From NCBI GenBank assembly GCA_051530055.1, contig CM121341.1, positions 19,198,784 to 19,262,783 on the forward strand: a DNA stretch of 64,000 bases, in the 5' to 3' direction. This DNA is from Neoechinorhynchus agilis (lineage: Eukaryota > Animalia > Acanthocephala). Shown here in pieces: positions 8,695 through 62,479 of this stretch. The notes below the pieces were generated by a model. It had not been told where the DNA came from and searched no databases. It saw only the letters and a list, made by a program, of their open reading frames with translations. Numbering within the stretch: the stretch's first letter is position 1; each line of letters starts with the position of its first letter. The position numbers were made by a program, and so were the translations under genes.

Positions 8695-8785
8695 TAATGA
8701 CTGATGAGGCTTACTCGCGAAATATTTCAATTCAAAAAATATTTTCTATTCGGGATTATGATAACCACATCTGCAAGTTTAGAAA
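8695..8785 (+). ncRNA. Degenerate hammerhead-like motif of the dispersed Penelope-like repeat
   Basis: atga-CTGATGA-ggcttactcgc-GAAA-tatttc; stem II has lost GAGG relative to other copies; downstream cgggattatg resembles the family sequence. Confidence 0.5.
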
Positions 8786-11159
8786 TGTTTGGTACTTTTT
8801 AGTCATGTACAGTGAGTAGCGTATCTAACTAAACAGGAGTCTTTCTAAATTAACAACGATGTTGGAAAAATTGATTTAATATGCATTATGCTTATTTAAA
8901 ACACAAGAAACCTCATAATTACCTTCAACGATTCAGGTATTAAAAATTACGAGCATGTTTGCTGATTGGCCAGAGTGGTACTAGTTAATAATTTCCATTC
9001 AGTAATTATTAGTTATCTTAGCGAATTATTATTTCTAGCATTAAAAACGTCTTTTTGTTAAAAAAATTTAATTTTATTTAAATTTTAACGGGTCATGATT
9101 AAGGCACATTGTTGGATTCAAAGAATCGATTGTCTCTTGCAATAAAGTCTAGGACAATCAAGAAGTAGCAAGATTGATTTTTTTAAATAATAAAATTTAA
9201 TAGGTTTTACAATAATAAAGCACAAAACGTGCAATCACCACCGTCCGAAAAATTGGAGCTTCTCTCCTTCCTCGGCTGTCGTTATCACGCTGATTGATTG
9301 TTGCAACAAGTGAAGAAGCTGGAGCGCATTAGCGGCGTGATTAAAGAACGATATTAATAAATTATGGGGTTTGTCTCAATATATTTAAATTATTGATCTT
9401 AGGAACATTTTCGCTCTTGTTATTACGGTAATCGGTAGCAAAGTCCTGATAGTATGGCGATAGAATTTTTGTGTCAGCAATTTATTAGTTCTCATATTTT
9501 AAAATGTCATTTTGACGTATGCCAAGCAGAAAATCAAGCACAGTAAAAGATGATATTTTTATTGATTATTTATACCAAGTGATAGAAATTCAAAGTCACA
9601 ATTATCACCATATTTCGCTCTTGTTTCCTATTTTTAGCCTTTTGAATAGAGAAATATTCGGGTTGATTTCTTTCACTTTATTTTTCATAGTAGAAGTAAA
9701 ACGATTGCTTACGCAAAACTTAAATACAATAATTGACAATCCATATTTGGAAACTAAATAAGTTATGTTCCCGATTGAACACGTTAGACATTTGAAGTAA
9801 TTTATAACAAACATTCTTTGAGTAGAATTTCGTTAAATTTGAACATGTTTTTGGTCTGAATTTTTCCTAATCTATACAACAAATTACACCGCAAAGACAA
9901 CAAATTTGTGAGTGTTAGCCCGACCGTATTTTCAAAATCAACCGCATAAAAGAAGCTACCGTAGTGCTCGCTGATCACCGTAAAATAAGTTACAAAGTTT
10001 TACGTTCAATTGTGAAGTATAATCTCTTATTTTTCACTGACAAATCAACGCAGAAATAGCATTTGTGGAAAATCGACTTTAAATACATGGTTTTTGGCCA
10101 AGCCAAATAAAGAAAAATGATTTAATTTGATTCGGGACTTCTTCAGAATTGTTTAAGTGTTGTATTCTCACTAAGTGTGCGTCCGAGAGCCAGTGATGAA
10201 AATCTAAATCATTTGATGAAATTTGGAGCTATTAATTCGCCTTTAATGTAATTTTAAGTTCCAAAAACTATCGTTTCTTATCTTCGATAGGTTGAAATGC
10301 CGAACGAAACAAAATCATAACGAGTGCATTCGTCAAAAACAATTGCTTCGATATTCCCCTGAATTGGTGTTCCTTGGAGAAATGAATGTACTGGCGATTC
10401 TTTACGGACCAGTTGAAAGTGGCATGGTCATAAGTGTGGTTCCATTCCTACAATGAAATCGCAACCACGTTTGTTTATAAACTCAGAAAAAAGTAATTTT
10501 TCATAATTTTGCGTGGTTTATTAAGCGATAAAACCGAGAGACTTTTGAAACATTACCATACAAATTGTTAAAAGTAAGACGATTATTCGGACACGGCCAA
10601 AATAAACGCTGTTGCCTTTATGACAAAAATGACGAAAAAGCACATCTATTATATCAGATAAGCCCGAAGAGATTGTCTATATCCCTAATCTACTAAAACT
10701 CCAGTTGAACGGCAAAACAACGTTGTTGTTTATCGGAAAGCTTGGCTATCGACTCAGATATCGAGTGCAAATAGCCACATCGGAACATTTTAGATTTGAT
10801 TGGTTCTTGGTTTTGGAACACATTTCCATTTTGATTTTATTTCTTTATAGCACCTTGCGTCTCTAAGGTTTAAAAAAGTACGATTAATCATAAGGTTTCA
10901 TAGGCCAAAGAGAATCTCAACCAAAAGAGAGTTGTTGAATCGAAGTTCCTAAGCAAAAATGTACACTGAGGTGAGACACAGTATGCATTTTGGAATAAAG
11001 CTTTCCCATATTACTTTAGCGAACCTACGATACTACTTTTATTGTGCAATTCAATTATGAGATAGATGAGAAACCATTTTAAAATAAAATTGTATTTGCC
11101 ACCTAATGTATACCAGTTTCAATTTGAAATATTTTTTAAAACATAATTCGTTTAACGTC

Positions 11160-11850
11160 GTAAACACTTGCGAACAACACATCCAGCAGGAACATCCTCA
11201 TCCTTCGGTCGGAGTAATCCTTGGGGAGTCCTGCCCTTCCTAACCACAAACGAACCATCATCTCCTTCCAGAATTATGCAACTGTACTCAACTTCTACTG
11301 CTTTACTTCCCATGATTTCTGCGTATGATATCCTCATGCTCCTTTGGAAACTACCACGTAAATCTTCCACTATCTTTCCCATTCCCAATTGGGCTTTACA
11401 CTTTATTATCCCAGTTTTAATTGACCCTCAGACTCATATAATCAACCAAAGTTTCATGACTGGAATCTTCCCTAATTGCCTTAAAGAGCTCTGGCAACCT
11501 TGCTCCTGCAGGGAGGCTAACTAATATCCACCTAAAATTTTCCGGCCATCTCCATCTTACCTTCCATCTCAAAAGTCAATTCTCTTCGTCATAATCTTTA
11601 TGCACGCCCTTCATTTATCTCTCGACCCATCCGAATCGACATTTATAAAGCTTTTGATTCCATTGATCACAATCTTCTCCTTGAGTCATGATTTAAGTTT
11701 CGTCTTGCCGCCCGGCAAATCAAGTGGTTGAAATCATTCCTAACAAAGTGATTTTTATCGCGATACGTTTGCTTACAATTGTTTAAAACTTTTGAAGTCG
11801 AGTTGCGTTTGTAATGCACAAGCAGTGAGGATAATGACATTCTACATACG
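11160..11850 (+). mobile_element. Degenerate L2/CR1-like LINE reverse transcriptase fragment
   Basis: LWKLPRKSS..IPNW..LIDPQTHIINQSFMTGIFPNCLK and later IKWLKSFLT match motifs of the pre-RT/RT region of APE-type LINEs; multiple frameshifts. Confidence 0.6.
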
Positions 11851-11920
11851 CTGACTATAGTGACACATTCCAATCAAATAAGGCGGATTACAGACTAAAA
11901 CTCAGAAATCCTGCGAAACA

Positions 11921-14900
11921 ATGGAAATTGACGGAACGAATATGAGGAAATCAGACGATGGATATAGCGACGGATCAGATTCACCTCCCAGGCCTATACC
12001 TCCAACAAGGCTCAGGACGATCTCAGCATCGGATAGGTTTTGCCGAAATTCCAAATTACGTCACAATGTGTTCAAATCGTCTACAATCGACGCTGCTGAC
12101 GCAGATAATTTGAACGCACCACTCATCGATCATGATCAACCTGAGAAGACCAACGCTGCCGGGCTCCCACGCGTCTCTACTGGTTTGTGTCCGGTTTGCG
12201 GTAAGTCTTTTAAATTAACCAATCTGGGGGGTTTTGTTTGTCCATGGTCCCCAGGATCTCCGCTGTAGCGGGTCTGGTTCTCCACCACAATTAACCGAAC
12301 CTTTTGTGCCTGAGACCCCTCAGATCACCACTGATTCTATTTCTATACCTGATATCGTGCGGTTTCTGCCCAGGAACGTCCTGAAACGGATCCCTAAAGG
12401 CGCGCGATATCTGGTCGCCAAAGCATTTACGGGATTGCTCAACGATTGCGTGCAAACGAACTGTGCACATTCATGGACACGGCTCTTCGCTTTCCCGCGC
12501 TTAGCCCTCTGCACCAGCGGTGATTCTGGGGTGTCTTTGACATCAACAATGAAGGAAAGGTTAGCCTACTTTGAACAAATATTTAACAATTTTGAAAGGA
12601 ATCTGCGCGAGGTTCGTAAGGGACGCACGAATGAAGAGTTTCGCTGCCGTTTTTCAAAACGATCACTGACTGAGCGTGTCTCTTCGAAGCTTGCTGACGG
12701 GGATGTTCGGGGGGCTGTTCGGTTATTGTCATCCTCCGACAGTTTCGCAAAAGGAAACAGCGAGACGCTACAAATACTCCGGTCGAAGCACCCATGTAGT
12801 AGCGGAAGTTTTGAAATTCCATCTCCTCCCATACAAGAAAGGACGCCCACTCAAATTTCAGAGATAAAAAAGGCCATCTCAACTTTTGCAAATGGTTCGG
12901 GTCACGGGCTTGACGGACTAAGGCCACAGCACCTAAAGGACACGATGTCCTTTTCAACCGGTGAAGCAGCTCTCTCTCTAGGAAGTGCGCTTTCTCGAAT
13001 AGTCGACCGCCTGACTGGAGAGGACCTGAACCCCGCTGCAAAGGACCTATTTTTCGGAGCCTCATTGTGTGAGCTCACAAAAAAAGAAGTTGGGATCCGT
13101 CCCATCGCCGTATCTTCGACGATACGACGACTAGCAGGAAAATTTCTCTGCAAACGTATTACAGAGAAAACCGGACAGCAACTTCTTCCAGTCCAACTGG
13201 GCTGCTGCATATCCTGCGGGGCGGAGGCTATTGTCCACTCGCTCCGAAACTTTGTTACGAGAAGCTCAGAGCCGTGCGTGATTCTTAAGTGTGATTTTCG
13301 GAACGCCTTTAACTCTCTCAATAGAGAAACCATGTTCCGCGCAATAAGGGATCATGCCCCAGAAGCCTTCCAGTATTTTCTCAATGCCTACGGGACGGCG
13401 ACTCTTTTGCTTTTCGAAGACCGCCTCATTTGGTCCGAAATAGTAGTGCAGCAAGGAGATCCCCTCGGTCCAATCGCATTCTCACTAACAATAAATCCAA
13501 TAGCGCATTCTCTCCATTCCAGCTTCAACGCTTGGTACTTGGATGACGCTACGCTCGGAGGTGATCCCTCCGTTGTACTGCGCGATTTGGAGACGCTGAT
13601 TAGGGAGACCTCGAAGATGGGCATTGAGCTCAATGCTGGAAAATGTGAGCTCCTTGTATTGAATATTGGAGACGCCGCCAAAGTCAAAGAACTAATGGCT
13701 GGGTTCGAGGCCGTAGCTCCAGGTCTGAAACTCGTGACTCGGGAGCAACTCAGCCTCCAGGGCAGTTGCGTCTTTGATTCAAATGTGGAAGTTGAGATCG
13801 GTCATATCATACCGAAACTTTCGTTGCTGTGCGATAGGGTGAGCGCTCTCTTGGCTCATGAAGCCTTGTTTCTCAAAAAGAACGCGCTCTTCATCCCCAA
13901 ATTATTGTACAAGGTTCGCACAGCAACATTTTTCAAACATAAGGAAGGATTGGCTAAGCTCGACGGCAAGGTGAGGGCTTGTCTCGAGCGTATTTTAAAT
14001 GTCCAGCTCTCAGATGAGGCGTGGCGACAAGCTTCTTTGCCTGTGTCATCTGGGGGATTGGGGATTCGGGCACTAGTGGACCTTGCTTTGCCGGCCTTTC
14101 TTGGATCGTTTGAGGGGAGCCTACCAATATCGAAGAACATTTTGAAGGAAAAGTTCTGTCTTGACCGGGATTTCGTGGTGGCGGTTTAGGAATGGTGCCA
14201 GCAGACAGGCGCTAACCATGTTCCCGTGAATGGCCTCAGACAGTCGATCTGGGACGGACCTCTTGTCGCGAGAGCTCACAGCTCTCTACTTTCAGGTTCT
14301 CGCGATGGGGTCGTCCGAGCTAGACTGTTGGCAGTTTCAACACGAGAATCTGGGGCGTGGTTGGAGGCTGTTCCTCTGGCATCAGTGGGAAATCTTCTTA
14401 TTGATGAGGTAACGAGGATCTCAGTATCCTTAAGATTTGGTCTATCGATATGCACGCCCCATCGCTGTCGATGTGGGTCTTTGGTTGATGCTTTCGGGCG
14501 ACACGGTCTCGTCTGCAGAAGGTCAGGAGGAAGGTTCTCACGCCATTCTGAAATCAATAACGCAATTTCTCGGGCGTTGAGAACGGCGAACTTCCCGAAC
14601 ATCCTGGAACCCGCCCACCTTTGTCGACTAGACGGCCGTAGACCCGATGGAATTTCGGTCTTCCCGTGGCGGGAGGGCAAATGCCTTCTCTGGGACGCCA
14701 CGTGTGTGAACACCCTCGCAGCCAGCAACATTCGCTACTCCCTCGAAATCGCCGGTGGTGCCGCCAGTGCAGCGGAAGGGAGGAAAATACGCAAATATAT
14801 TCAGTTATCATCGATAGAAAGTCCTTCGGGATAATAAAATTACACTTTCGGTGAGAATATTCCCGGTCATTACATATTTTATTTATTCGAAATATTTCGC

Positions 14901-15345
14901 GAGGTATCCTCACCTCTTCAGTCATTGTTTCGCAAGCGCTGAAGTGACAAACTTGCGAAACAATGACTGAAGAGGCGAGGATACCTCGCGAAATATTTCG
15001 AATAAATAAAATATGTAATGACCGGGATTATTCTCACCGAAAGTGTGATATTCAGTTATCGAGGACTCACTATTTTGTCCCCTTTGGGGTAGAGACGTAT
15101 CGAGCGCTCGGCAGCTCGGCACTCTCTTTGTTCCAGGATGTCTCGAAGAAATTGATAGAGGCAACCGGAGACTCAAGAGCAGGTGTATTCCTTCGACAAA
15201 ATATCTCGCTGGCAGTACAATGAGGCAATGCTGCCAGCGTGATGGCTACGGTCGAGGAAGGACAAAAGCTGGAATTTGGCGGGAGGTGGTGAGTGTGCTT
15301 CAAACAGATTGTTTGAATTGTTAAAAATATATTATGTTTTTTTAA
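11921..15345 (+). mobile_element. Near full-length, inactivated CRE-like non-LTR retrotransposon (Zn finger + RT + restriction-like endonuclease)
   Basis: CPVC...HGP...C finger; RT motifs IRPIAV, DFRNAFN, VQQGDPLGP, WYLDD, GGLGIR; RLE motifs RH..IN, RPDG, WDATC, PFGVET, SLAVQ*GNAA. Frameshift ~12230, TAG at 14187, TGA at 15221, insertion at 14810-15047; ORF end at 15292. Confidence 0.9.
14810..15047. mobile_element. 238-bp fold-back insertion with 95-bp arms and two hammerhead-like cores (Penelope-like pLTR derivative)
   Basis: Arms 14842-14936 and 14952-15046 (two mismatches, 15-nt loop); flanked by a 13-bp direct repeat ATATTCAGTTATC (14797-14809 and 15048-15060); removing it restores RKYIQLSRTHYFVPF in the RLE domain. 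Confidence 0.85.
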
Positions 15346-15541
15346 GCTAATGGTTTAATCATGGCTCACTATAAAGTCAGACATGAAAACAAGAAGCCGT
15401 TTAACCTAGGAGATCGCATGATTCTCGTAGCGCTTTCGTTACTTTAAATTTAAGGCAAATCATAGAGCCCTAGGAAAAACCCAAAGACATTAAATAGTGC
15501 TTCATTATTGTGTACAAATCAGAGCCGTCAAAGAAGGCAAC

Positions 15542-17878: not shown

Positions 17879-18469
17879 GCTTTTACGATCCCAATATTAA
17901 ATAATAAAGTGATAATCAAACACGGGATGTAACTCGATATTAACTTGCTCCGAATGCCCTTTCTAAGACGATATTCTAACCTCTATTTAAACGGCAACAT
18001 CGATTTTATCGACCTAAGAACATGAAAATAATCACTGAGTTTTAAGAAAATACATATAACATCGATATCTTCAGAAGATAATTAGTTGAAATAAAAGCAG
18101 AATCCCGACCAACTCACGCATGGGCGCTTCTTTAATTCAACTTGTAAAATCTATTCGCTTGCACATTTTAACACCAGCAAGCACATTTTGAGGAAAATCA
18201 AAAAAGATTTGCGATGCTGAACGCATTGTTATATTTTTAATTGAGTTGTATTTATGAACAAACTCAATTTAGCCATTTAAGATTTAAGGGCGAATCAATA
18301 TCAAAGCTGCGTTTCCATACTCATCAACGTTATCGCTGTTCGACATCAAATTCGATATGTAACTTTAATCGATTAAGATCATTGGAGAGATCAAACTTCA
18401 TCGAATACGATAATCGTTTAGATTTTCGGAGCATTTTGGTGCTCGTCCACAAGGGATCGCCTTTATCAA

Positions 18470-19985
18470 TATCAACCTTACACAATCTTTAAAGGATAAC
18501 TTTCATTAGATGTGGAAGTAACTTGGAGGTATAAAGGACAAAATTTAGTCGTAGCTGACGCTTAAGAAGCGGACAGCGCAAATAATGGATTGCTTCGATG
18601 CTGTCCCTTTTTTAGGAATGCTACCTTCATGCACTGCATTTGTTGATCGTAGCATTTTGTAGAATACAAAGGAAAATTAGACAGCGAGTTTACTAACGTG
18701 TACAAAACTGACTTCGAGAATCAATTTAAAAGACGTTCTATCGATATCGACGGCACCGAGTCTTTAAAGGATAACTTTCATTAGATGTGGAAGCAACTTG
18801 GAGGTATAAAGGACAAAATTTAATCGTAGCTGACGCTGAAGAAGCCGACAGCGCAAATAATGGATTGCTTCGATGCAGTCCCTTTTTTTAGGAATGCTTC
18901 CTTCATGCACTGCATTTGTGGATCGTAGCATTTTGTAGAATACAAAGGAAAATTAGACAGCGAGTTTACTAGCGTGTGGAAAACTGACTCCGAGAATCAA
19001 TTTAAAAGACGTTCTATCGATATCGACGGTACCGAGTCTTTAAAGGATAACTTTCATTAGACGTGGAAGTAACTTGGAGGTTTAAAGGACAAAATTTAAT
19101 CGTAGCTGACGCTGAAGAAGCCGACAGCGCAAATAATGGATTGCTTCGATGCAGTCCCTTTTTTTAGGAATGATTCCTTTATGCACTGCATTTGTTGATC
19201 GTAGCATTTTGTAGAATACAAAGGAAAATTAGATAGCGAGTTTACTAGCGTGTGCAAAACTGACTCCGAGATTCAATTTAAAAGACGTTCTATCGATATC
19301 GATCGTACCGAGTCTTTAAAGGATGACTGTCATTGGATGTGGAAGTAACTTTGGAGATATAAAGGACAGCATTTAATCGTAGCTGACGCTTAAGAAGCGG
19401 ACAGCGCAAATAATGGATTGCTTCGATGCAGTCCCTTTTTTACGAATGCTTCCTTCATGCACTGCATTTGTCAATCGTAGAATTTTGCAAAATAACAAGG
19501 AAAATTAGACCGCGAGTTTACTGACGTGTGCAAAACTGACTCCGAGAATCAATTTAAAAGACGTTCTATCGATATCGACCATACACAATCTTTAAAGGAT
19601 AACTTTCATTAGATGTGGTAGTAACTTGTGAGATATAAAGGACAGCATTTTATCGTAGCTGACACCTAAGAAGCCGACAGCGCAAATAATGGATTGCTTC
19701 GATGCAGTCCCTTTTTTGAACGCTACCTTCATGCACTACAGCATAATAGATTGCTTCGATGCAGTACCTTTTTTTGGAACGCTACCTTCATGCACTGCAT
19801 TTGTGGATCGTAGCATTTTGCAGAAAACAAAGGAAAATTAGACCGCGAGTTTACTGACGTGTGCAAAACTGACTCCGAGAATCAATTTAAAAGTGATTTT
19901 GTCGATAGCGACCGGACCCAGTCTTTAAAAGATAACTGCCATTAGATGTGGAAGTTACTTTGCAGATATAGGACAGCATTTTATG
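18470..19985. repeat. Tandem array, ~276-bp unit, about 5.4 copies
   Basis: Marker TTTAAA(G/A)GAT recurs at 18488, 18763, 19039, 19315, 19591 and 19924; the last unit has an extra ~57-bp internal duplication. Confidence 0.95.
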
Positions 19986-20855
19986 CGCGTTTCAACCGTT
20001 TATCCTTATAGTTATTTGATCCTCCTTTCGCTCTTGTTCCTACTCGTTCAGATGTTTCTTCGACCTTTTGTTCGACCGTAGCTTTCTTAGTAGTTACTGA
20101 AGGTGAATCACTTTCACTTTTCCTATCGTTACCTTTTATCTTGGTCACAATATCATGCTCCTTCACAGTAATTTTCGAATCATTAAGTACTGCAGGCTGA
20201 ATACCCTCCTGAGGTTGGTACCAAGTCCCTTGTAATTGTTGAAATATTCGCTGTCTTTTGGATACCACTCGTTTCCAACGAATCTTCGCTTGAGTTTGCC
20301 ACAATGATAGAATCTTCCAAAACCGTATTATCCTTCGTGGCAGCTTCACTAGCCGATTTATGTAAGCCTTTAGCTCATTTCTTAGAATTCCCCTTTGAAA
20401 TCTTTGCCTCTTTGTACTGTTAACTTTTTTCCCTTTGCACTTTTTGACTTCGACCAACTGTTCACTTTTGAGAGCTTCAATTTCGCACTGAATAGCTTCC
20501 GCTAATATACCCTAAACTGTGCTCATCGCTTCAATTAATGAACCCTTTAGAGTATCAGTGACTCGTTCAAAACACTTCTTTTGTGCAACATCAAGAAAAG
20601 CAGAATACTTGGTAGATTCTTGTTCACCGTTCATTGATTTGTTGAGAGAGTAGACGTTAACGAGAGGGAGAGGACGTTATCGAGTTCAGCGGTACGGCAG
20701 ATTGAACTACGAAGGTCTGCGATTTTTTGTGTTAAGAAGTGGATGCCACTAAAAAAGAAAGGTACTTTAATACTGATTTTAACAGACTTCAGCGATCTTG
20801 CTGCAACTTCGCTTCGAAAATGGCTTAATGAAGAAGAAAGTTCGGTTTCAACCAT
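19981..20855 (-). pseudogene. Orphan, probably disrupted coding sequence inside the inverted duplication
   Basis: Reading frame MNGE...AMSTV*..AEAIQCEIEALKSEQLVEVKK continues through one TAG; Lys/Arg-rich with an IQ-like RIIRFWK/IRWKR stretch; no family recognised. Confidence 0.4.
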
Positions 20856-21004
20856 TTTAAAAAGGGGTTATGACAAAATCGGAAACGTGATTTTCTTTGA
20901 ACAATCGTATTAAACAAAAGATCATTATAATGTTTAATCTTTTTTTCGATAATTTTTAAATTGTTAATTTCTGTTTGGAGGATTTTAAATTATACGAAAA
21001 ATAT

Positions 21005-21288
21005 ATGACGTTACTGATGAGGCGAGGTTACCTCGCGAACTCAAATAAATCAAATAGGTTATGACCGGGATTACTTTCACCAAAAGTACACTTTGATTAA
21101 CCCGAAGGATTTTCTCTGTCGATGATATACGAAAAATGTTTCATGAGAATTTATTGGTTCCAATATTTCGGCCCATTATCAAGGTTAATTTATACGGATA
21201 ATGTTTAGCGCTCAAATATTGAACGAATCATTTTAAAATCGAAACCGGCAATCGATTTTTTCGTGGAAGTGTGAACTTGGGTTCGTTT
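21005..21288 (+). ncRNA. Degenerate hammerhead-like core plus downstream Penelope-like repeat sequence
   Basis: CTGATGA-g-GCGAGG-tta-CCTCGC-GAAc at 21014-21040 (ATATT lost), followed by gaccgggatta...ccgaaggattt shared with other copies; mirrored at 56302-56328(-). Confidence 0.55.
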
Positions 21289-22255: not shown

Positions 22256-23437
22256 ATGAAGACTTATTTGCCCCAAATAAATTGGCACGATCAAGATCAG
22301 ATTTCATCGTGCCACTTCAATCCCGCGGATCCAGGGGAGTTAGTAACTTGCGGTGCTTCGCCCAATATTAGGATATGGCGCTTTGACGCTTTGGATCCAG
22401 GAAATCTGGTCACGTTCATGAGCGAGTACACTGTTCACGTTCCGTGGATTAACTGTGTCAGATTTAACTCCACCGGAAGGCAAATTGGCTCTTGCTCGGA
22501 CGATGCGACTTTATGCATTGTAGAAAAACACATTCAAGTGACGGATGATCAAACGGCGACCAATTCTTGGAGAAAGGTTAGGAGATTAAGAGGTCATCTA
22601 CAACCAGTGGTGGATTTTGCTTGGTCGACGGATGATAGATTTATCGTAAGTGGATCGATGGATAACATCCTAATGGTATGGAATGTCGAGCACGAGAATC
22701 GAATTGCAATGTTCCCTGATGCTACCGGTGGGATCGTGGGGGTTTGTGTGGATCCTTTGGGACAATATTTCTGCTCTCAGAGTACAGACCGTTTCTTGAG
22801 ATTATACGATTGGGACAAATTAAGGTTGGCAAATAAGGTGTGCAAAGTGCCACCGTTCAAATTACCGGGTATAAAAACACCAAGGACCCTTTTGAGTATT
22901 TTTCAAGGACACGATGTTGCATCACTCAATCGCAGGCTGTGCTTTACTCCCGATGGTCAATTTTTAATCGCCACAAGTTGTAGTTGCGAAGGAATGGATC
23001 TCCCAAGCGGGCATAGTCTCAGTCGATCAGCCGCAGTATTTCATCGTTCTGATTTCGAAAAACCAGTTGCCTTTCTACCTGTTGACCCAACTGAATCGAC
23101 CAAAGGAGTAGCGGCATATCCATTTAAGCTCAAGCTTATATCGGATAACTGCCAAGGATTCGGTAAAGGCCTGAACTTAGTTTATCGGTTGGTTGTCGCG
23201 GTCGTGACGGGAATATCACTCATAATCTTCGATTCCCATCAACCAATTCCACTTGCTTACATGACTGGTGCTCATTACGGTGACCTATCAGATGTACAGT
23301 GGTCTTCGGATGGATGTGCTCTTTGCATTTCATCCTTAGATGGATTTATGACACTTATATCTTTTGAAGCTGGAGAATTTGGGGAAACGTATTTTGAACG
23401 TCAAACTGCGTGCGAGCCAATGGATCTGAGTGAGTGA
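22256..23437 (+). CDS. CHAF1B: Chromatin assembly factor 1 subunit B (p60/Cac2), WD40 protein
   Basis: N-terminal MK...QINWHD, WD repeats (GHLQPVVDFAWS, SGSMDN, VCVDPLGQY, SQSTDR), RRLCFTPDG, HYGDLSDVQWSSDG...SSLDG. Confidence 0.9.
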   Translation: MKTYLPQINWHDQDQISSCHFNPADPGELVTCGASPNIRIWRFDALDPGNLVTFMSEYTVHVPWINCVRFNSTGRQIGSCSDDATLCIVEKHIQVTDDQTATNSWRKVRRLRGHLQPVVDFAWSTDDRFIVSGSMDNILMVWNVEHENRIAMFPDATGGIVGVCVDPLGQYFCSQSTDRFLRLYDWDKLRLANKVCKVPPFKLPGIKTPRTLLSIFQGHDVASLNRRLCFTPDGQFLIATSCSCEGMDLPSGHSLSRSAAVFHRSDFEKPVAFLPVDPTESTKGVAAYPFKLKLISDNCQGFGKGLNLVYRLVVAVVTGISLIIFDSHQPIPLAYMTGAHYGDLSDVQWSSDGCALCISSLDGFMTLISFEAGEFGETYFERQTACEPMDLSE

Positions 23438-44365: not shown

Positions 44366-44367
44366 TA

Positions 44368-44520
44368 ACATAAATGATTTATTTGAAATATTTCACGAGG
44401 TAGCCTCGCATCATCAGTCATTGTTTAAGTGTTTTATTGAACCACAATTCTAATTTGATTATGCCGAAGGATTTTATATCGATGATTTAAGCGAATTTTT
44501 CTGTTCAACTTTAATGAGCT
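44368..44520 (-). ncRNA. Intact-looking hammerhead-like core with an adjacent inverted Penelope-like remnant
   Basis: Minus strand: atga-CTGATGA-t-GCGAGG-cta-CCTCGT-GAAA-tatttca (44417-44385); plus strand 44440-44480 accacaattctaa...ccgaaggatttt is the downstream part of the same family. Confidence 0.65.
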
Positions 44521-46599: not shown

Positions 46600-47490
46600 A
46601 ACATACACTTAAAGGTTTAATCACCGAGAGAGAAAATCCTTCGTGATAATAGAGTTAGAATTGTGGTAAGCATACTCCCGAGCATGACATATTTAATAAT
46701 AAATACACGTTTTATTTAAAAGAAGATCAAGTCACCGAGCCTAGTACCTTAGGTATCCAGTGAATCTTCTACTAAGTTGACTTTGGTTTGTTTATTGTTA
46801 GTTGTTGTTTTCCGTTCTTTCCTCCGAATAGATTCGCAGTTGGAGGATTGAGCGGTTGAGAAAAAAGACCGGAAGTAGAGATTTGTGCGACGAAATGAAT
46901 GATGGAAAATGTTGGGGCGACGCGAGCGCTGTAAGGGGGTAGTAAAAGGCGAAATGTGTGATAAAAATTGAAGAGGCGGAAGAGCATCGAGGCCCTTTGA
47001 GTGCTTTTGAAAGATTGGAGAGAGGTGTTATTCTAAGGGCACGAGTTCGGAGGAGCAGATTATAGCGCACGTCGTGTGAAAAGTATTAACTTTTGTGAAT
47101 AGTTTAGAAGAAAAATTTCAGAAGGTTGGACTTGTGTAGGTGAGCGTTGGTTAGGATGGCGGAGTACTTAAGGTCTTTGGATGATAATCCAAGGAATCGG
47201 AGGCGCTTAAGAAGATAGAGCTTAATGGACCCCTTGCGCGACAAGATTGATATGTGCTTGCCCCACTTTAGATTTTCTTGAAAATGAAGACCGCGTATAC
47301 GAACAGAGGAGAGACGATTGATAGGAAAAGGAAAAAGTGGCTGATTGGAAGGGCTATTTGAGATTGAGGGGACGATTTCAAAGCACTTGGTTAAGGATAA
47401 GACATTTAGAGGAGTTAAATGCTTGAACGTGAGAAATCTCGTTAGAAATATTTCACGAAGTAACCTCGCCTCACCATTCATTGTAAAATT
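46600..47490 (-). mobile_element. Penelope-like repeat remnant split by an L2/CR1-like RT 3' fragment (~46730-47440)
   Basis: Degenerate core ATGGTGA-g-GCGAGG-tta-CTTCGT-GAAA-tatttc at 47477-47445; family sequence resumes near 46710 (cgggagtatg..accacaattctaa..cgaaggatttt); insert encodes LKWGKHISILSRKG..LYLLKRL. Confidence 0.7.
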
Positions 47491-54076: not shown

Positions 54077-55393
54077 CTACCGAGCCAACAAATCTTTCTT
54101 TTCCTTTAGATCGTCAAGGTTGCTCTCGAACTTTACTTGCAGTTGCATAAGTCTTGTTTTTTTTGACAAAAACGAGACCTTGATTTGGCGGAACCTTGAG
54201 CTCATCTCTTGTGCAATTAGTTTCCTTTGTTGGGAACCAACTTTTGCAACATCGAATACTCGTTTCATTGCTGCGAATTGTGCGCTGATATGTACGACAT
54301 ATTCTCGCAATTCTCGGTATTCAATCAAATCGTTTCGAAGAGTTTCATCACTTACGGACTCCAATCTTTTAAGAAACGTTTCTTTATCCATGGGACCACT
54401 GTGCGAGTGCTTTTCGCTGTCCGAATTCGTTGAGAAAATTTCAGTATGTTCGGTGCTCGACGCTGCACATGATGTCTTAGTCACTTGATCGTGATGATCC
54501 ACTTGTAAAGGAACGTTGTTCTTACTAATAGCAATCCTCTTTGTAGAAGGCGGGCTTATACTATCATGGTTGCTTTCAGTTTGATCGCCCCTTTTCGACT
54601 CTAATAAGCATTTTGTAAAAGGACTACCAGTGGACCTGATGGAATTTGCAGACGCCGTGGGTTTTGATGAATTCCTCTTGTGAGGATGTACGCAGATCGG
54701 CGGACCTGTAATTCCACGATTATCCAAAACTTTACTTACAAGATACTTTTCATACTTCGAGTAACCTTCCCAATCGCGATCCACTTCGTCAAACAACTGA
54801 TGCTTTAAATTATACAGGTGATCGGTTTTAAAGGAAATTTCGGACAGTATCTCCTCTAGCGAGCTCGCGTACTTTTTGGTGGTTCGACCGATGCGCACTA
54901 GTACCTTTTCCTTTCTCAATGAACCCAGTGCAAGAATTTGAATAAATCGCCTACGAATTTCACCCTTTGTCTTCGACATGCTAGTTAAACGAATGGGTTT
55001 GTCCTGATTTACGGTGACTATTTTGCGTATCACATTATTGAGTTTTAACGTTTCGTTCTTCCCAGTAACGCAGAGGCCGAGAAGTAGACGAGTCGCTTGA
55101 ATCGATTTAAACTCAAACGTCGATTGTGCCGATCGTTCGTCTTCGATGACAAAAGCGCCCTCGTTTTCACCCCCGAACATGACATATGTACGCTTTGTTG
55201 ATGGATCCAAAAGACTGTTCAATAGATCGGCTGTTAAGGAAATCAATCCAACTTCCTGTTCATTGTTTTCTTTTGATTGCAAATCCCCTTTCAACGTAGA
55301 GCGCCGGTTCTTAGTTGCAGATGCAACTGTTCCAGAAATGTGCTCAATTCGTTTGTTCAATGTTTTTGACCGTCTATTGGTGCACTTCGACAT
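54077..55393 (-). CDS. ELL: RNA polymerase II elongation factor ELL
   Basis: IRRRFIQILAL, YNLK..LFDEVDRDWEGYS (ELL N-terminal region) and a C-terminal occludin/ELL-like helical domain (EYRELR...SKKTRL.QL..K). Confidence 0.8.
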   Translation of the reverse strand: MSKCTNRRSKTLNKRIEHISGTVASATKNRRSTLKGDLQSKENNEQEVGLISLTADLLNSLLDPSTKRTYVMFGGENEGAFVIEDERSAQSTFEFKSIQATRLLLGLCVTGKNETLKLNNVIRKIVTVNQDKPIRLTSMSKTKGEIRRRFIQILALGSLRKEKVLVRIGRTTKKYASSLEEILSEISFKTDHLYNLKHQLFDEVDRDWEGYSKYEKYLVSKVLDNRGITGPPICVHPHKRNSSKPTASANSIRSTGSPFTKCLLESKRGDQTESNHDSISPPSTKRIAISKNNVPLQVDHHDQVTKTSCAASSTEHTEIFSTNSDSEKHSHSGPMDKETFLKRLESVSDETLRNDLIEYRELREYVVHISAQFAAMKRVFDVAKVGSQQRKLIAQEMSSRFRQIKVSFLSKKTRLMQLQVKFESNLDDLKEKKDLLAR

Positions 55394-56486
55394 CTGAACG
55401 AAGACCGAACTTACATTTAATACGATCGGGTTTTAGACAAAGAAACTGCAAAAGTAGGAGCTATAACGAATTCTCTCCATATTTCATCGAGCAACGGCGA
55501 CAAATACACTTTTCAACTGCTGTCAGTTCTGTCTTCTGACGCGAAAAGAGTTTAGAGTGCACTCACAATTTGAAATTTCGCAAAAATTAAGTGCAAAACT
55601 ATTTCTAAACCTATCCTCGAAATAATTCGTTACGTTAAAGATTTATGCAACGAAGACGCACATACGATCCAAGGAAGACTAAAGGATGGCAAACGCTGAC
55701 ATTACGAAACACTCGTCGGTATCATGGAAGCTCGACGCAGGTGAATCGTTTGTATGCAACAGTAGAAACGGTGCTCGATTGAACAATAGTGGAGGTGAAA
55801 GACTACAGCAATGGCGAAGGAAAAAGTTCATTTGCGTTAAACAACGGCTGAGACCTTAGGATGCGCCAAAGTACGAACACTGGTCGCAAATATCGGCGAA
55901 TTCTAGGTTATTAAGCGCTCATCATCCAAACGTATTGATAAATAACGTGAGTTGAGCGATTTACGGCAAGTGCTTTTTGCACGCGTATTCTGTATTCTCA
56001 ACGATTGCACGTTCGCTCATCGTGCGAAACACTTTACCGAACAGTCTTGAACTAAACGAACCCAAGTTCACACTTCCACGAAAAAATCGATTGCCGGTTT
56101 CGATTTTAAAATGATTCGTTCAATATTTGAGCGCTAAACATTATCCGTATAAATTAACCTTGATAATGGGCCGAAATATTGGAACCAATAAATTCTCATG
56201 AAACATTTTTCGTATATCATCGACAGAGAAAATCCTTCGGGTTAATCAAAGTGTACTTTTGGTGAAAGTAATCCCGGTCATAACCTATTTGATTTATTTG
56301 AGTTCGCGAGGTAACCTCGCCTCATCAGTAACGTCATATATTTTTCGTATAATTTAAAATCCTCCAAACAGAAATTAACAATTTAAAAATTATCGAAAAA
56401 AAGATTAAACATTATAATGATCTTTTGTTTAATACGATTGTTCAAAGAAAATCACGTTTCCGATTTTGTCATAACCCCTTTTTAAA

Positions 56487-57361
56487 ATGGTTGAAACCGA
56501 ACTTTCTTCTTCATTAAGCCATTTTCGAAGCGAAGTTGCAGCAAGATCGCTGAAGTCTGTTAAAATCAGTATTAAAGTACCTTTCTTTTTTAGTGGCATC
56601 CACTTCTTAACACAAAAAATCGCAGACCTTCGTAGTTCAATCTGCCGTACCGCTGAACTCGATAACGTCCTCTCCCTCTCGTTAACGTCTACTCTCTCAA
56701 CAAATCAATGAACGGTGAACGAGAATCTACCAAGTATTCTGCTTTTCTTGATGTTGCACAAAAGAAGTGTTTTGAACGAGTCACTGATACTCTAAAGGGT
56801 TCATTAATTGAAGCGATGAGCACAGTTTAGGATATATTAGCGGAAGCTATTCAGTGCGAAATTGAAGCTCTCAAAAGTGAACAGTTGGTCGAAGTCAAAA
56901 AGTGCAAAGGGAAAAAAGTTAACAGTACAAAGAGGCAAAGATTTCAAAGGGGAATTCTAAGAAATGAGCTAAAGGCTTACATAAATCGGCTAGTGAAGCT
57001 GCCACGAAGGATAATACGGTTTTGGAAGATTCTATCATTGTGGCAAACTCAAGCGAAGATTCGTTGGAAACGAGTGGTATCCAAAAGACAGCGAATATTT
57101 CAACAATTACAAGGGACTTGGTACCAACCTCAGGAGGGTATTCAGCCTGCAGTACTTAATGATTCGAAAATTACTGTGAAGGAGCATGATATTGTGACCA
57201 AGATAAAAGGTAACGATAGGAAAAGTGAAAGTGATTCACCTTCAGTAACTACTAAGAAAGCTACGGTCGAACAAAAGGTCGAAGAAACATCTGAACGAGT
57301 AGGAACAAGAGCGAAAGGAGGATCAAATAACTATAAGGATAAACGGTTGAAACGCGCATAA
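56487..57361 (+). pseudogene. Second copy of the orphan disrupted ORF
   Basis: Same reading frames and the same internal TAG (acagtttag) as 19981-20855. Confidence 0.4.
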
Positions 57362-58560
57362 AATGCTGTCCTATATCTGCAAAGTAACTTCCACATCTAA
57401 TGGCAGTTATCTTTTAAAGACTGGGTCCGGTCGCTATCGACAAAATCACTTTTAAATTGATTCTCGGAGTCAGTTTTGCACACGTCAGTAAACTCGCGGT
57501 CTAATTTTCCTTTGTTTTCTGCAAAATGCTACGATCCACAAATGCAGTGCATGAAGGTAGCGTTCCAAAAAAAGGTACTGCATCGAAGCAATCTATTATG
57601 CTGTAGTGCATGAAGGTAGCGTTCAAAAAAGGGACTGCATCGAAGCAATCCATTATTTGCGCTGTCGGCTTCTTAGGTGTCAGCTACGATAAAATGCTGT
57701 CCTTTATATCTCACAAGTTACTACCACATCTAATGAAAGTTATCCTTTAAAGATTGTGTATGGTCGATATCGATAGAACGTCTTTTAAATTGATTCTCGG
57801 AGTCAGTTTTGCACACGTCAGTAAACTCGCGGTCTAATTTTCCTTGTTATTTTGCAAAATTCTACGATTGACAAATGCAGTGCATGAAGGAAGCATTCGT
57901 AAAAAAGGGACTGCATCGAAGCAATCCATTATTTGCGCTGTCCGCTTCTTAAGCGTCAGCTACGATTAAATGCTGTCCTTTATATCTCCAAAGTTACTTC
58001 CACATCCAATGACAGTCATCCTTTAAAGACTCGGTACGGTCGATATCGATAGAACGTCTTTTAAATTGATTCTCGGAGTCAGTTTTGCACACGCTAGTAA
58101 ACTCGCTGTCTAATTTTCCTTTGTATTCTACAAAATGCTACGATCAACAAATGCAGTGCATGAAGGAATCATTCCTAAAAAAAGGGACTGCATCGAAGCA
58201 ATCCATTATTTGCGCTGTCGGCTTCTTCAGCGTCAGCTACGATTAAATTTTGTCCTTTATACCTCCAAGTTGCTTCCACATCTAATGAAAGTTATCCTTT
58301 AAAGACTCGGTGCCGTCGATATCGATAGAACGTCTTTTAAATTGATTCTCGAAGTCAGTTTTCCACACGCTAGTAAACTCGCTGTTTAATTTTCCTTTGT
58401 ATTCTACAAAATCCTACGATCCACATATGCAGTGCATGAAAGTAGCGTTCCAAAAAAGAACTGCATCGAAGCAATCCAAAATTTGCACTGTCGGTTTTTA
58501 AAACATCAGCTACGATTAAATGCTATCCTTTATATCTGTAAAGTTACTTATTTTGCCATT
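57360..58560. repeat. Tandem array, ~276-bp unit, about 4.3 copies
   Basis: Reverse complement of the 18470-19985 array, including the 57-bp internal duplication in the innermost unit. Confidence 0.93.
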
Positions 58561-58700
58561 AGTAGTCATCCTTCGTAGACATGGTCATAAAAATGGTAAA
58601 CTCGGACTTAGATTACTTCTAAAACGTTAATTTTTCCACTACAGTCAGATTGTTTCCGTCCCATATTGTAAATTGTTATAATTGAACAATGGGATGTTTT

Positions 58701-60415: not shown

Positions 60416-60674
60416 TTGAACAATGGGATGTTTTACTTTATTTGATCCTTCGTTTCTTTTTTATAGAATAAAAAGATAGAATCGATAAATCTGAACAAAT
60501 ATAATGCATTGGGCAATGCTAGGACAAACTACACGTGGAGCTCGGTAAAAGATTTTGAGATTCGTTAGAGGCACGAAAGGTTTTGTGTGGAGAAGCCAAA
60601 GTTGTTACATAAAAGGTTGATTCGGGAAACGAAGATGACCACACATTTTTTTGAAAGTAAACGAATCCTTTTCC

Positions 60675-61262
60675 TTAACCTTCCTCCTCTTCGTCATCGT
60701 TATCTCCACCGGCACCAGTTTCTGCCTTCTTTCTGGCATTACGTCTTTTAACACGACCAGGTCGCCCTGACCTATAAGGAGAATTAGCACTGTGTTCAAT
60801 GTGTTTCTGAGAGTCCAGTCGAACAATAAACGAAGGAACATTGACCAATTGCTTTCTAACACTAATATGGCGCTGTCTGATCATCACTCGAGCATGATGA
60901 ACACTCTTGGCCAATCCCAATCGATGAACTTGCGTCTGAAGACGCCGTTCAAGGAAGTCCTGTGGCTTTAGACTCAAAACGTAATCCAATTTCATTCGAC
61001 CTTCATCGAGAATTCCGTATCGCACGAGGCGACGTAACAGAGCATTTCCTTGAAACACCCTTTTCGGATCCTTTGGAGGAAGAGTCAACAACAAGCGAGC
61101 CGTCTTACGGACCTTCGCCAACGTGAATTTCACACGCCACAGTTCTCTCTTATTGCGGAGACCATACTCACCGACCAATCTTAGTTCCTGATCGAGACGT
61201 TCCTTTTCGAAGGGGCGTCGCGGGGTAATGTAAGTCTTGCTGCAAACGCGGGGAAGACGCAT
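60675..61262 (-). CDS. RPS9: 40S ribosomal protein S9 (uS4)
   Basis: [54 protein letters not shown]; true ATG at 61262, the upstream part of the listed ORF is not RPS9-like. Confidence 0.98.
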
Positions 61263-61933
61263 TGCCTGAGCACAAACACGCGGGCGGGGCAAAATAATGC
61301 GAACAGGAGCGCACGGAAGAATTACGAGGATGCGCAAACGGGTGTGGCCATGCGATATTTCGGCGTTTTAGGTACGAGGACTTATATCGGATCGCATTTA
61401 TCGGCATAATTTTATACTTTATAAAATGGAATATTGAGTTGAACTCTTCGTGTAGGATGTAGTGGTCGAGTAAATATTGAGCTGCGTTCTCAAAGGAAAC
61501 GTAAACTCCATTTTTGCGGGCCGAGGGTTTGTAAATATATTTCGATCGCGTATGGTAAAATTCACATTTCCGCACACAACACTCGGACTGTTCTTACGCT
61601 GAAACTAAAGTTAGTTTATTTTGATAAATCCGCACAAACATTCGGAACAATCCAAGTCGCTATTCATTGTTCACTAATGTCGATTTTGTACCGAAATAAA
61701 AAGAATTGTCAAACATTTGACACCTATCCTAGAGCAAATTTTCTCAGATTGTCAACATCGCCAAACTGCTACTTCCACAAAAACAAACACTTCTATCAAC
61801 ATAGTCTTCCCTTGCAGCAACATCCAAAACGCTCCCATTCGTAATCTGCAGTCTACAGGAATGTTGCCGCAATATAAAGCAAGTTATTCGCGTCTTCTCT
61901 TCCTCCTCCAGTCGTATATTTCGCCATCAATCA

Positions 61934-62167
61934 ATGCCGAGCGACAAAGACAATTTCGAGGATAAGCTAAGAACTCTACAAGGTATGATTCCAAGCTAGC
62001 CTTGTACGCAAATACACATTTGCTACTTTTCTTCAGATCTTATCAGCAAGGTTAAATCTGTCAAAGAACGCAATGCAAGAACGAAACTCGAGAACGAGCT
62101 TCTTAAACAACAGATGCAATCTCTCCTTCTTACAAGCTCAGTGTTTGAACAAATGAACAATATTTGA
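61934..62167 (+). CDS. SCOC: Short coiled-coil protein (SCOC/UNC-69 family), two exons, intron 61983-62036; absent from the ORF track
   Basis: Spliced product MPSDKDNFEDKLRTLQDLISKVKSVKERNARTKLENELLKQQMQSLLLTSSVFEQMNNI matches the recalled SCOC pattern TL.DL..RV..VKEEN.KL..EN..L.Q....L...SSVF. Confidence 0.7.
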
Positions 62168-62172
62168 TCTTT

Positions 62173-62479
62173 GATAGAAAGTCCTTCGGGATAATAAAAT
62201 TACACTTTCGGTGAGAATAATCCCGGTCATTACATATTTTATTTATTCGAAATATTTCGCGAGGTATCCTCGCCTCTTCAGTCATTGTTTCGCAAGCGCT
62301 GAAGTGACAAACTTGCGAAACAATGACTGAAGAGGCGAGGATACCTCGCGAAATATTTCGAATAAATAAAATATGTAATGACCGGGATTATTCTCACCGA
62401 AAGTGTGATATTCAGTTATCGAGGACTCACTATTTTGTCCCCTTTGGGGTAGAGACGTATCGAGCGCTCGGCAGCTCGG
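62173..62479. repeat. 307-bp copy of 14813-15119 (hairpin insertion plus flanking RLE sequence)
   Basis: Constant offset of 47360; two differences seen, both restoring perfect arm pairing here; one copy of the 13-bp TSD followed by 59 bp of RLE. Confidence 0.95.

Follow-up and report, generated by a model that had tools for sequence, protein, structure and literature searches.

Predicted minimal hammerhead ribozymes in short fold-back repeats of Neoechinorhynchus agilis, very probably derived from Penelope-like retroelements

Introduction

The minimal hammerhead ribozymes (min-HHRs) of metazoan Penelope-like elements (PLEs) lack helix III and loop 3, and their positions 15.2-16.2 are palindromic (Cervera & De la Pena, 2014; PMC4209133). 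Insertions of PLEs carry an inverted 5'-truncated copy and a tail of 30-40 bp at one end (Craig et al., 2021; PMC8557442). For the Poseidon element of Anolis, reverse transcription has been found to start at two internal sites, with both strands of AT-rich targets being cleaved and extended, and the hammerhead overlaps the start of the ORF, so that an overlap of ribozyme and coding sequence is already on record (Frangieh et al., 2024; PMC11167929). Another related group, the non-LTR retrozymes of animals, consists of head-to-tail tandem units of ~170-400 nt with canonical helices I and II, which give rise to circular RNAs (PMC7229834; bioRxiv 10.64898/2026.07.22.740005).

Here, we describe repeats from a 64,000-nt stretch of the N. 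agilis genome (the window), for which a sequence-only reading had proposed ten hammerhead-like sites of the Penelope-type minimal type-I form in an inverted arrangement. Judged by its sequence, the motif has every published feature of the metazoan PLE min-HHR (PMC4209133): the core (CUGANGA and GAA), one unpaired nucleotide after A9 (A9/10.1), the G10.1-C11.1 pair, a long helix II (4-7 bp here), A15.1-U16.1 around a palindromic dinucleotide with no helix III beyond A15.1-N-N'-U16.1, U, C or A at H17, and a short helix I. The likeness to the published PLE ribozymes extends to the coexistence of numerous consensus families in one genome, with compensatory changes, to pairs on opposite strands ~100 bp apart and to the prevalence of solitary truncated copies. 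Unlike in the published set, the hammerheads of this genome have, with few exceptions, A at N7 and U at H17, and several families contain a 10-12-nt palindrome (CGAAAUAUUUCG) that overlaps the GAA core. The repeats also resemble the retrozymes in being non-autonomous, related to PLEs and equipped with a type-I hammerhead that needs a nearby second copy. In contrast to retrozymes, the hammerheads here are minimal and are arranged in inverted pairs; head-to-tail tandem repetition, by which retrozymes are recognized, is not seen in the window, where each copy is either part of an inverted pair or a single arm and where these hammerhead units form no tandem array.

Hammerhead motifs in the window

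The ten proposed sites are precisely the ten best matches of a covariance model (R1) that was built from nine distinct hammerhead families of this genome and run over the whole window with filters off (E 7e-13 to 0.05), the 11th match having an E value of 0.7. Given that MAFFT shifted the AAUU-type families by one column, the AUAU-type subset was used for the model and the remainder was aligned by it. A strict pattern, CTGANGA..GAAATATTTC, occurs at six sites in the window and at none in 100 shuffles. The catalytic core is intact at five of the ten sites (14967, 14921, 62281, 62327 and 44417) and decayed at the other five (Table 1). Two of the latter, at 21014 and 56328, represent a single sequence counted twice, by virtue of a 2.4-kb inverted duplication with 99% identity. 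The copy at 41420, correctly noted to use a different stem, belongs to a separate family (GGCC aacgaaaa GGCC) with intact members elsewhere in the genome. The predominant hammerhead family of the window, with the GCGAGG stem, is found genome-wide in 46 identical copies and in 104 copies with at most two mismatches, compared to none for a control pattern.

The search with hammerhead models that had been suggested as a check gave no match in the window when Rfam models were used at the gathering score (Hammerhead_1, _3, _II, HH9 and HH10), nor was any hammerhead family recovered at E values up to 10 from the 341-nt region 14780-15120, where generic long-hairpin families (mir-4716 and MIR6020) were the sole matches. 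This miss counts against the assignment, but it is expected because the Rfam models include helix III, which is absent from min-HHRs.

Table 1. Features of the window (positions are those of the 64,000-nt stretch; scores are those of covariance model R1; the slash marks the predicted cleavage site)
Feature	Position	Strand	Score	Remarks
R2-like LINE	12234..14809	+		Host of the insertion; outside the PLE system
LINE RT ORF	12234-14189	+
LINE C-terminal part	14226-14809	+		CCHC/PD..D restriction-like endonuclease
Left target-site duplication, 14.9-kb unit	14797..14809			ATATTCAGTTATC; LINE sequence
Fold-back mini-insertion attributed to a PLE (14.9-kb unit)	14810..15047	.		Two hammerheads, long and short arm
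Long arm, 14.9-kb unit	14810-14936			Minus-sense hammerhead; includes 37-nt tail
Intact min-HHR motif	14883-14929	-	59.4 bits	One G-U wobble in helix II (GUGAGG)
Short arm, 14.9-kb unit	14952-15047			Follows 15-nt centre; plus-sense hammerhead
Intact min-HHR motif	14959-15005	+	61.3 bits	CUGAAGA G GCGAGG-AUA-CCUCGC GAA AUAU U/UCG
Right target-site duplication, 14.9-kb unit	15048..15060			ATATTCAGTTATC
Second fold-back unit (62.3-kb unit)	62173..62407	.		99% copy of 14.9-kb unit; first 3 nt missing; two intact min-HHR motifs
Intact min-HHR motif, second unit	62243-62289	-	61.3 bits
Intact min-HHR motif, second unit	62319-62365	+	61.3 bits
Older single arm, intact min-HHR motif	44379-44425	-	57.7 bits	CUGAUGA U GCGAGG-CUA-CCUCGU
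Inverted tail fragment near this arm	44451-44482	+		32 nt
Decayed copy (site 8701)	8693-8734	+	40.3 bits	5-nt deletion collapses helix II
Decayed copy (site 47477)	47439-47485	-	34.8 bits	Core CUGA changed to AUGG
Separate arm/tail fragment, GCGAGG family	46628-46697	-
Decayed copy (site 21014)	21001-21048	+	22.1 bits	GAAA changed to GAAC; arm reaches ~21115, with tail-like sequence
Decayed copy (site 56328)	56294-56341	-	22.1 bits	GAAA changed to GAAC; duplicate of 21001-21048
Decayed member of other PLE hammerhead family (site 41420)	41381-41428	-	18.8 bits, E 0.05	GAA changed to GAC

Motif features and covariation

A descriptor search of 290,697 genome bases, in loci that had been selected, not at random, for their resemblance to the unit or to transposon proteins, yielded 29 distinct matches, 28 of which also show the features left free by the descriptor; in a reversed-sequence control, two matches were obtained, neither with the full feature set. 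For instance, the one-nucleotide bulge after A9 is found in all 28 full-feature matches, even though the descriptor permitted zero or one nucleotide, and G10.1-C11.1 (or G-U) is present in nearly all of them. Similarly, AUAU or AAUU followed by U, C or A occurs in 28 of the 29 matches and is absent from the reversed control.

Covariation of helices I and II is seen in a set of at least 11 hammerhead families from this genome. Between families, 88.9% of the cells are paired, compared to 62% in shuffles (0 of 500), both sides change in eight of nine pairs, and controls with a slid register are at most 47% paired; the covariation of helix II is partly built in, as stems shorter than 4 bp were excluded by the descriptor, whereas helix I lies outside the descriptor. 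For helix I, 80.6% of the cells are paired and both sides change in all four pairs. Across 40 distinct rows aligned by the model, the paired fraction is 83% versus 66.7%. The covariation that the sequence-only reading had put forward as a check is thus present, and its register is supported, with an A-UA-U or A-AU-U palindrome, predicted cleavage after U17 and helix I next, for helix I covaries in exactly that register. The 4-nt helix III, by contrast, is not shorter than usual as had been thought but is the published min-HHR form (PMC4209133).

The sequence-only reading had also pointed to the stem II changes, and all three that occur in the window do give G-U wobbles; among young copies genome-wide, pair-breaking changes (CCTCAC, GAGAGG, GCGATG, CCTGGC, CCTCGA, GCGTGG and CCGAGG) are about as many as wobble changes. 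Stem changes in recent copies hence look like neutral decay, the real covariation being that between families. In the GCGAGG family, helix I comprises only 3 bp and helix III only four A-U pairs. For two such hammerhead segments, RNAcofold predicts, instead of the catalytic fold, a 10-bp GAAAUAUUUC duplex in which the GAA core is tied up. Self-cleavage after U17, in a dimeric or protein-assisted form, is predicted from the sequence.

Fold-back units and their insertion signature

The fold-back units are 200-260 bp long and consist of two ends joined head to head, each truncated 15-45 nt upstream of the hammerhead. As RNA, the 14.9-kb unit is predicted to form a single hairpin of ~100 bp (-171 kcal/mol, z -27). 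The 62.3-kb unit copies this pair together with 59 nt of the adjoining LINE sequence (62408-62466) and has no target duplication of its own. Downstream of the hammerhead, every insertion continues for ~90 nt or for another 37 nt beyond these, and of 14 inverted pairs, from 14 independent loci, 13-14 have this 37-nt tail at one end and not at the other. AT-rich target duplications of 10-14 bp (10, 11, 11, 12, 12, 12, 12, 13 and 14 bp) flank nine of 13 insertions, and two more have imperfect ones. The central junction is unique in each copy, and one arm is often truncated within the hammerhead. The arms extend no more than ~45 nt upstream of the hammerhead, and the stretch upstream falls into a few subfamilies. 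One pair of long PLE copies elsewhere (L055) is likewise arranged head to head, with hammerheads facing outward. A unit is a head-to-head junction of two PLE ends with extreme 5' truncation, and the AT-rich target duplications, the one-sided tail and the private junctions are all known hallmarks of PLEs. Unlike in canonical EN+ PLEs, the commonest product here has both copies cut down to the leader.

Parental Penelope-like elements

An intact RT and GIY-YIG element of 826 aa (PLE826) is present in tandem elsewhere in this genome. Its hammerhead, CTGAAGA G GCAAGG-AAAA-CCTTGT GAAATATTTCGAATA, is nearly identical to the window type and lies 42 nt before the ATG, and its copies end ~93 nt after C3 or ~35 nt beyond. 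A PLE transcript of this genome has a minimal type-I hammerhead at the junction of pseudo-LTR and ORF; in contrast to Anolis Poseidon, the ATG of the intact element is downstream of the predicted cleavage site, not within the hammerhead. Adjacency of hammerhead and RT/GIY-YIG ORF was read directly for the GCAAGG family and for L055. For the GCGAGG family, the linkage to an RT/GIY-YIG element rests on coordinates at two loci: in C1:321193-323753, RT and GIY-YIG matches lie between two hammerheads in direct order, and in C2:1002731-1004922, a 5'-truncated RT is preceded by one hammerhead in inverted orientation, with another located past the end of the ORF. A GIY-YIG match near the units at C1:613-620 kb was rejected as a partner, being a 270-bp tandem array of endonuclease fragments. 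The linked ORF that the sequence-only reading had suggested searching for is thus found elsewhere in the genome. Its observation that no such partner is visible in the window is accurate with respect to PLEs, as tblastn with the intact element detected no PLE coding sequence in the window, but an RT is present, namely, that of an R2-like LINE. Protein database searches with the 826-aa PLE returned relatives at 24-34% identity only, none from this genome, and these do not show where the ORF of the GCGAGG family starts.

Origin of the repeats

Collectively, the motif features, the insertion signature and the link to PLEs support the Penelope-type assignment, and the repeats are very probably 3'-terminal pieces of PLE insertions. 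Like fold-back MITEs, the units form a long perfect hairpin, are small and reach a high copy number, and a non-autonomous DNA transposon carrying a hammerhead-like string in its long inverted repeats by chance could account for the near-perfect 217-bp palindrome, for the many copies with 94-99% identity and for the restriction of Rfam matches to long miRNA-type hairpins. Such an origin is highly improbable and already largely refuted, given that the duplications are not of fixed length, the ends are asymmetric by the 37-nt tail, the centre is private to each copy with one arm often cut within the hammerhead, and the same leader and hammerhead are found at the ends of RT and GIY-YIG ORFs. It is equally hard to regard the repeat as the 3' tail of the R2-like LINE at 12.2-15.3 kb, or as a SINE mobilised by it, although the unit directly follows the RT/endonuclease ORF of this LINE and variable target duplications would also suit LINE-type target-primed reverse transcription. 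The LINE resumes at 15048 and ends near 15295; four other copies (L032, L033, L034 and L040) are continuous across the site; only one of 12 LINE loci, the window's own, has the unit at that place; and public contigs from four small sequencing runs include LINE copies that lack the unit (joints and loose ends at 14799-14809 / 15048-15051). The RT beside the 14.9-kb copy is thus that of a LINE into which the unit inserted, as attested by the 13-bp duplication of LINE sequence that brackets it. Assignment of the unit to a MITE, and then to the 3' UTR of the adjacent LINE, was accordingly rejected on the alignment of LINE copies and the target duplications.

The remaining alternatives concern what was conserved and what was copied. 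The frame MT..ARLPREIF..IIPKDF might be a real protein N-terminus, either a PLE ORF start or part of a host gene family, conserved without any RNA function; in the young family it runs for 38 codons without a stop, old copies are similar to it in part, the Poseidon ORF begins within its hammerhead (PMC11167929), and the spacing to the RT match at C1:322774 is compatible with an ATG at -3. We consider this rather unlikely: the ORF of the intact PLE starts 42 nt after C3 in another frame and aligns with a second open frame of the unit (MTGNILTESVILLSRRTFYR), stop codons interrupt the proposed frame in the leader of PLE826, the C2 copy at L053:752 and the 46.6-kb copy, and the covariation of helices I and II extends across families that would encode unrelated peptides. 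The proposal that this frame resembles a Penelope ORF start is thus not supported, as it is not homologous to the N-terminus of the intact PLE and contains stops in related families; an F-box-like or other protein N-terminus was dropped because no ORF continues from it and related copies have stops. Two candidate starts remain for the GCGAGG family, an ATG at -3 (MTEEARIPREIF), which would entail an overlap of ribozyme and ORF, or one at +52 (MTGIIL..); a long ORF beginning at ATGACTGAAGAGG would favour the overlap without removing the evidence for the RNA. A somewhat stronger, if still minority, possibility is that the units are true non-autonomous PLE mini-elements, in which a ~170-nt RNA from master copies, comprising the leader, the hammerhead and the RT binding and initiation region, is copied in trans, rather than by-products of full-length PLE RNA. 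The short reach of the arms upstream of the hammerhead, the few subfamilies of the upstream stretch, and the 104 near-identical hammerheads as against few long copies of the GCGAGG family are in line with this possibility, but the same short product would also arise from a full-length PLE mRNA if the RT began at the initiation site close to the 5' end of that mRNA, and the private junction of each unit implies that fold-back units do not copy themselves as units.

Under the preferred derivation from PLE insertions, the GIY-YIG endonuclease would make a staggered cut in the target, reverse transcription would proceed from two internal RNA sites primed by both DNA strands, as for Anolis Poseidon in vitro, and the two short cDNAs would meet in the middle to form a fold-back unit. 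The hammerhead may act in the parent element, as a dimer or aided by protein, in processing tandem or read-through PLE transcripts. In the fold-back units it would be masked by the ~100-bp perfect hairpin, for which reason these units most likely are not functional ribozyme genes but inert by-products. More tentatively, the units may be the natural footprint of dual-strand target-primed reverse transcription on a dedicated short leader RNA, that is, a mini-element consisting of the hammerhead and the RT-binding region only. One DNA strand might be extended from a proximal RNA start and the other from a start 37 nt further; such strand-specific start sites would explain the tail at exactly one end of every pair.

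Concluding remarks

The repeats are a clean new example of a known ribozyme class, not a new kind of ribozyme, and leave the knowledge of hammerhead ribozymes unchanged. The sequence-only reading was right about a ribozyme family that escapes annotation with Rfam. Our analysis adds a small, 46 Mb invertebrate genome in which more than ten PLE hammerhead families coexist, with clean covariation in helices I and II. The mechanism of Penelope integration is still poorly understood, and the regular mini-insertions, with their duplications of 10-14 bp, one-sided tail and private junction, could be natural test material for it. If the units are indeed the footprint of dual-strand reverse transcription, they would provide a genomic read-out of a transposition mechanism that has so far been seen only in vitro, for one lizard element.

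Genomic setting and the interrupted LINE

The window codes for a cadherin, ELL, a CAF1B/HIR1-type WD40 protein and a mitochondrial carrier, and is animal DNA. These host genes occur as single long ORFs (mitochondrial carrier, 2967-3941, minus strand; cadherin repeats, 5710-6717, minus; WD40 protein, 22256-23437, plus; ELL, 54077-55393, minus), a sign that introns may be few or short in this small genome (46.2 Mb, 102 contigs).

The sequence-only reading saw no RT in the window. An RT ORF does lie at 12234-14189 (RVT_1, 1.3e-15), with a restriction-like endonuclease part (CCHC / RPDG..D) on its 3' side. Its nearest solved relatives are R2 proteins, which identifies the element as an R2-like LINE and not as the partner of the hammerheads. 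Such LINEs are very abundant genome-wide (2692 first-look candidates, many copies at 90-93% identity), with open frames reaching 1221 aa. The window copy spans 11921-15295 and is interrupted at 14810-15047 by a fold-back hammerhead repeat. The LINE can be rejected as the source of this repeat: other aligned copies continue uninterrupted across its position, 13 bp of LINE sequence, ATATTCAGTTATC, are duplicated on either side of it, and LINEs without it are present in public contigs. The LINE was the insertion target.

Hammerhead cores in the window

The sequence-only reading had listed ten hammerhead-like cores. When the whole window was scanned, filters off, with R1, a covariance model trained on nine N. 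agilis hammerhead families that differ from one another, the top ten matches were exactly these sites (scores of 61.3 down to 18.8 bits, E from 7e-13 to 0.05) and the eleventh had an E of 0.7, so the list neither misses nor miscalls a site. As a strict string, CTGANGA-N(4-30)-GAAATATTTC matches the window six times, versus 0 in 100 dinucleotide-preserving shuffles. Read individually, the ten places represent a single repeat family plus one outlier, the 41420 copy, rightly set apart by its stem.

Hammerhead-like cores of the window and their state
State	Position	Strand	Basis or lesion
Intact	14967	+	site reading
Intact	14921	-	site reading
Intact	62281	-	site reading
Intact	62327	+	site reading
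Intact	44417	-	site reading
Decayed	8701		helix II deletion
Decayed	47477		CUGA to AUGG
Decayed	21014 and 56328		GAAA to GAAC
Decayed	41420		GAA to GAC

Not all sites are independent. Those at 21014 and 56328 are one sequence within a 2.4-kb inverted duplication whose arms (18885-21288 and 56054-58457) are 99% identical, lie 34.8 kb from each other and each carry a 276-bp satellite array (18330-20041; 57292-58585). The 62.3-kb pair duplicates the 14.9-kb pair, including 59 nt of flank, at 99% identity; its fold-back unit has no target duplication and so came in through DNA duplication, not retrotransposition. Together, the inverted duplication and the 14.9/62.3-kb copies suggest that a large segment around ~38.6 kb was duplicated in partly palindromic form. 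Further tandem arrays include nine copies of a 185-bp repeat (39502-41166), the last of which stops ~200 bp short of 41381-41428, the decayed hammerhead of GGCC type, and an array of ~200-bp period (62432-63996) directly after the 62.3-kb unit and its 59-nt LINE-derived flank.

Covariation among hammerhead families

Minimal type-I hammerheads of metazoan Penelope-like elements (PLEs) share a definition in which the two catalytic boxes are combined with a short helix I and a long helix II, one base between A9 and 10.1 stays unpaired, G10.1 and C11.1 form a conserved pair, and helix III is limited to A15.1/U16.1 around a palindromic 15.2-16.2; they form many covarying families per genome, sometimes with opposite-strand motif pairs 100-700 bp apart (PMC4209133). 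All of these features are present in the N. agilis motif. The 4-nt helix III, previously taken to be shorter than usual, is the standard minimal form.

A descriptor (CUGANGA, 0-1 nt, stem of at least 4 bp, GAAA) applied to 290,697 fetched bases yielded 29 distinct sequences, versus 2 in the reversed sequences. Among the former, 28 of 29 display features that the descriptor does not demand (a single bulge, A-(UA or AU)-U, and H17, the residue 5' of the predicted cleavage, other than G), as against 0/2 in the control. At least 11 families have unrelated helix II sequences (GCGAGG, GCAAGG, GTCTG, GTCCG, GTCCAAT, GGAGA, GATCC, GACGC, GTGAAC and two GGCC types), and the bases directly 5' of CUGA are complementary to those directly 3' of H17 in a family-specific manner (for instance, UAAUUGA/UCAAUUA, AAAUUG/CAAUUU and UCGA/UCGA). 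In a nine-family alignment, 88.9% of cells are paired compared to 62% in shuffles (0/500), with changes on both sides in 8/9 pairs; sliding the partner by 1-3 columns lowers pairing to 25-47%, and the pattern recurs when 40 distinct rows are aligned by the model. Because helix I lies outside the ascertainment, its covariation is the cleanest evidence for a hammerhead, and it fixes the originally proposed register, with predicted cleavage after U17 (between AUAUU and UCG).

Counting against a hammerhead, helix I of the GCGAGG family in the window has only 3 bp, and nearest-neighbour folding of two copies favours a 10-bp duplex, GAAAUAUUUC, in which the GAA box is hidden. The Rfam hammerhead models gave no match. 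Published minimal hammerheads cleave poorly in vitro (PMC4209133), and that of Anolis requires the element's own protein (PMC11167929).

Link to Penelope-like elements

The genome contains at least 145 GIY-YIG matches. In a tandem PLE array at C2:12.24-12.26 Mb (period ~2.6 kb), CTGAAGA G GCAAGG-AAAA-CCTTGT GAAATATTTCGAATA sits 42 nt upstream of every ATG; it differs from the window motif in its loop, in a closing pair that is G-U and in the compensatory replacement of a G-C pair by A-U. Terminal copies of this element stop ~93 nt after the core cytosine C3, or ~35 nt beyond, and its tail resembles that of the fold-back units (CCCGAGGAC versus CCCGAAGGAC).

For the GCGAGG family, the linkage is drawn from combined coordinates only. 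At C1:321193-323753(-), two of its hammerheads, 2.53 kb apart, surround RT and GIY-YIG matches in the correct order, the RT match being 51% identical to the 826-aa protein of PLE826, the intact tandem element. At C2:1002731-1004922, an inverted hammerhead arm is followed by a 5'-truncated RT (49% identity, open 481 aa) and, after the expected ORF end, a second hammerhead; contig C71 carries a twin of this arrangement. Another PLE family has a head-to-head pair of long copies at L055:1974-5393 (C1:17.70 Mb), with a hammerhead at each outer end, equal distances from hammerhead to terminus and a 703-aa open frame on the plus strand; this repeats the architecture of the small units at full scale. 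The helix II closing pair there is apparently G-A. GIY-YIG N-terminal fragments also form tandem arrays flanked by GTGAAC-type hammerheads (L052:4402-6424, i.e. C1:620.4-622.4 kb, and C2:5204799-5213238; periods ~270 and ~410 bp), which appear to be RT-less PLE stumps.

The evidence is divided on the proposal that the repeat retains a Penelope ORF start. The frame MTEEARIPREIF.. is open for 38 codons through the end of the long arm, partial similarity is kept in old copies, and the RT match at C1:322774 lies at a distance compatible with a start at the -3 ATG. Against this, stops interrupt the frame in the PLE826 leader, the L053:752 copy and the 46.6-kb copy, and a second, equally open frame, MTGNILTESVILLSRRTFYR, aligns at the nucleotide level with the intact PLE N-terminus ..TGGRIRQRTIKFTPRTM.., whose ATG is located downstream of the predicted cleavage site. 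A PLE hammerhead overlapping an ORF start has already been published (PMC11167929).

Anatomy and origin of the fold-back units

A 33-nt hammerhead string (≤2 mismatches) occurs 104 times in the genome, compared to 0 for the string read backwards, and many copies of the unit exist at 94-99% identity, mainly as head-to-head pairs. Alignment of 13 independent loci, with a scan for flanking duplications, revealed fixed outer ends: one arm terminates in ..CACCGAAAGTGTA(A), ~90 nt past C3, and the other extends 37 nt beyond, terminating in ..CCCGAAGGACTTTCTATCGAT. Of 14 inverted pairs, 13-14 have the 37-nt tail at a single end, and none has it at both. AT-rich duplications of 10-14 bp flank 9 of 13 cases. 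The centre is unique to each copy; one arm continues upstream past the hammerhead for 15-45 nt, and the other breaks off at any point, often within the hammerhead. With fixed outer ends, variable duplications and copy-specific centres, the units are independent events that did not arise by mutual copying, and a DNA transposon with fixed duplications is ruled out.

A whole-unit transcript is predicted to fold into a single ~100-bp hairpin (-171 kcal/mol, z -27). Because this would mask both hammerheads, we regard the units as probable by-products, which fits the roughly equal frequency of pair-breaking and wobble changes in helix II of young copies.

The repeats, described at the outset as Penelope-type hammerheads in a fold-back arrangement, indeed combine the PLE minimal hammerhead with PLE insertion architecture, both already known. 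PLE insertions are strongly 5'-truncated, often with an adjoining inverted 5'-truncated copy, and have a 30-40-bp tail, often at one end only (PMC8557442). The Anolis Poseidon protein, assayed in vitro, cleaves AT-rich sites on both DNA strands and extends both, and reverse transcription begins inside the RNA, ~110-120 nt into the ORF, at two positions separated by 30-40 nt (PMC11167929). The units look like the minimal product of such a dual-strand reaction: two short cDNAs, each with its start at either of two positions separated by 37 nt, would join mid-unit. In every arm, each alternative 3' end adjoins a small CGAA(A)-loop hairpin (CAC-CGAAA-GUG and UCC-CGAA-GGA; 15035-15046 and, on the minus strand, 14819-14828), and these hairpins may correspond to the stem-loop at which the RT of Anolis Poseidon starts. 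The one-sided regularity of these mini-insertions could inform the mechanism of Penelope integration.
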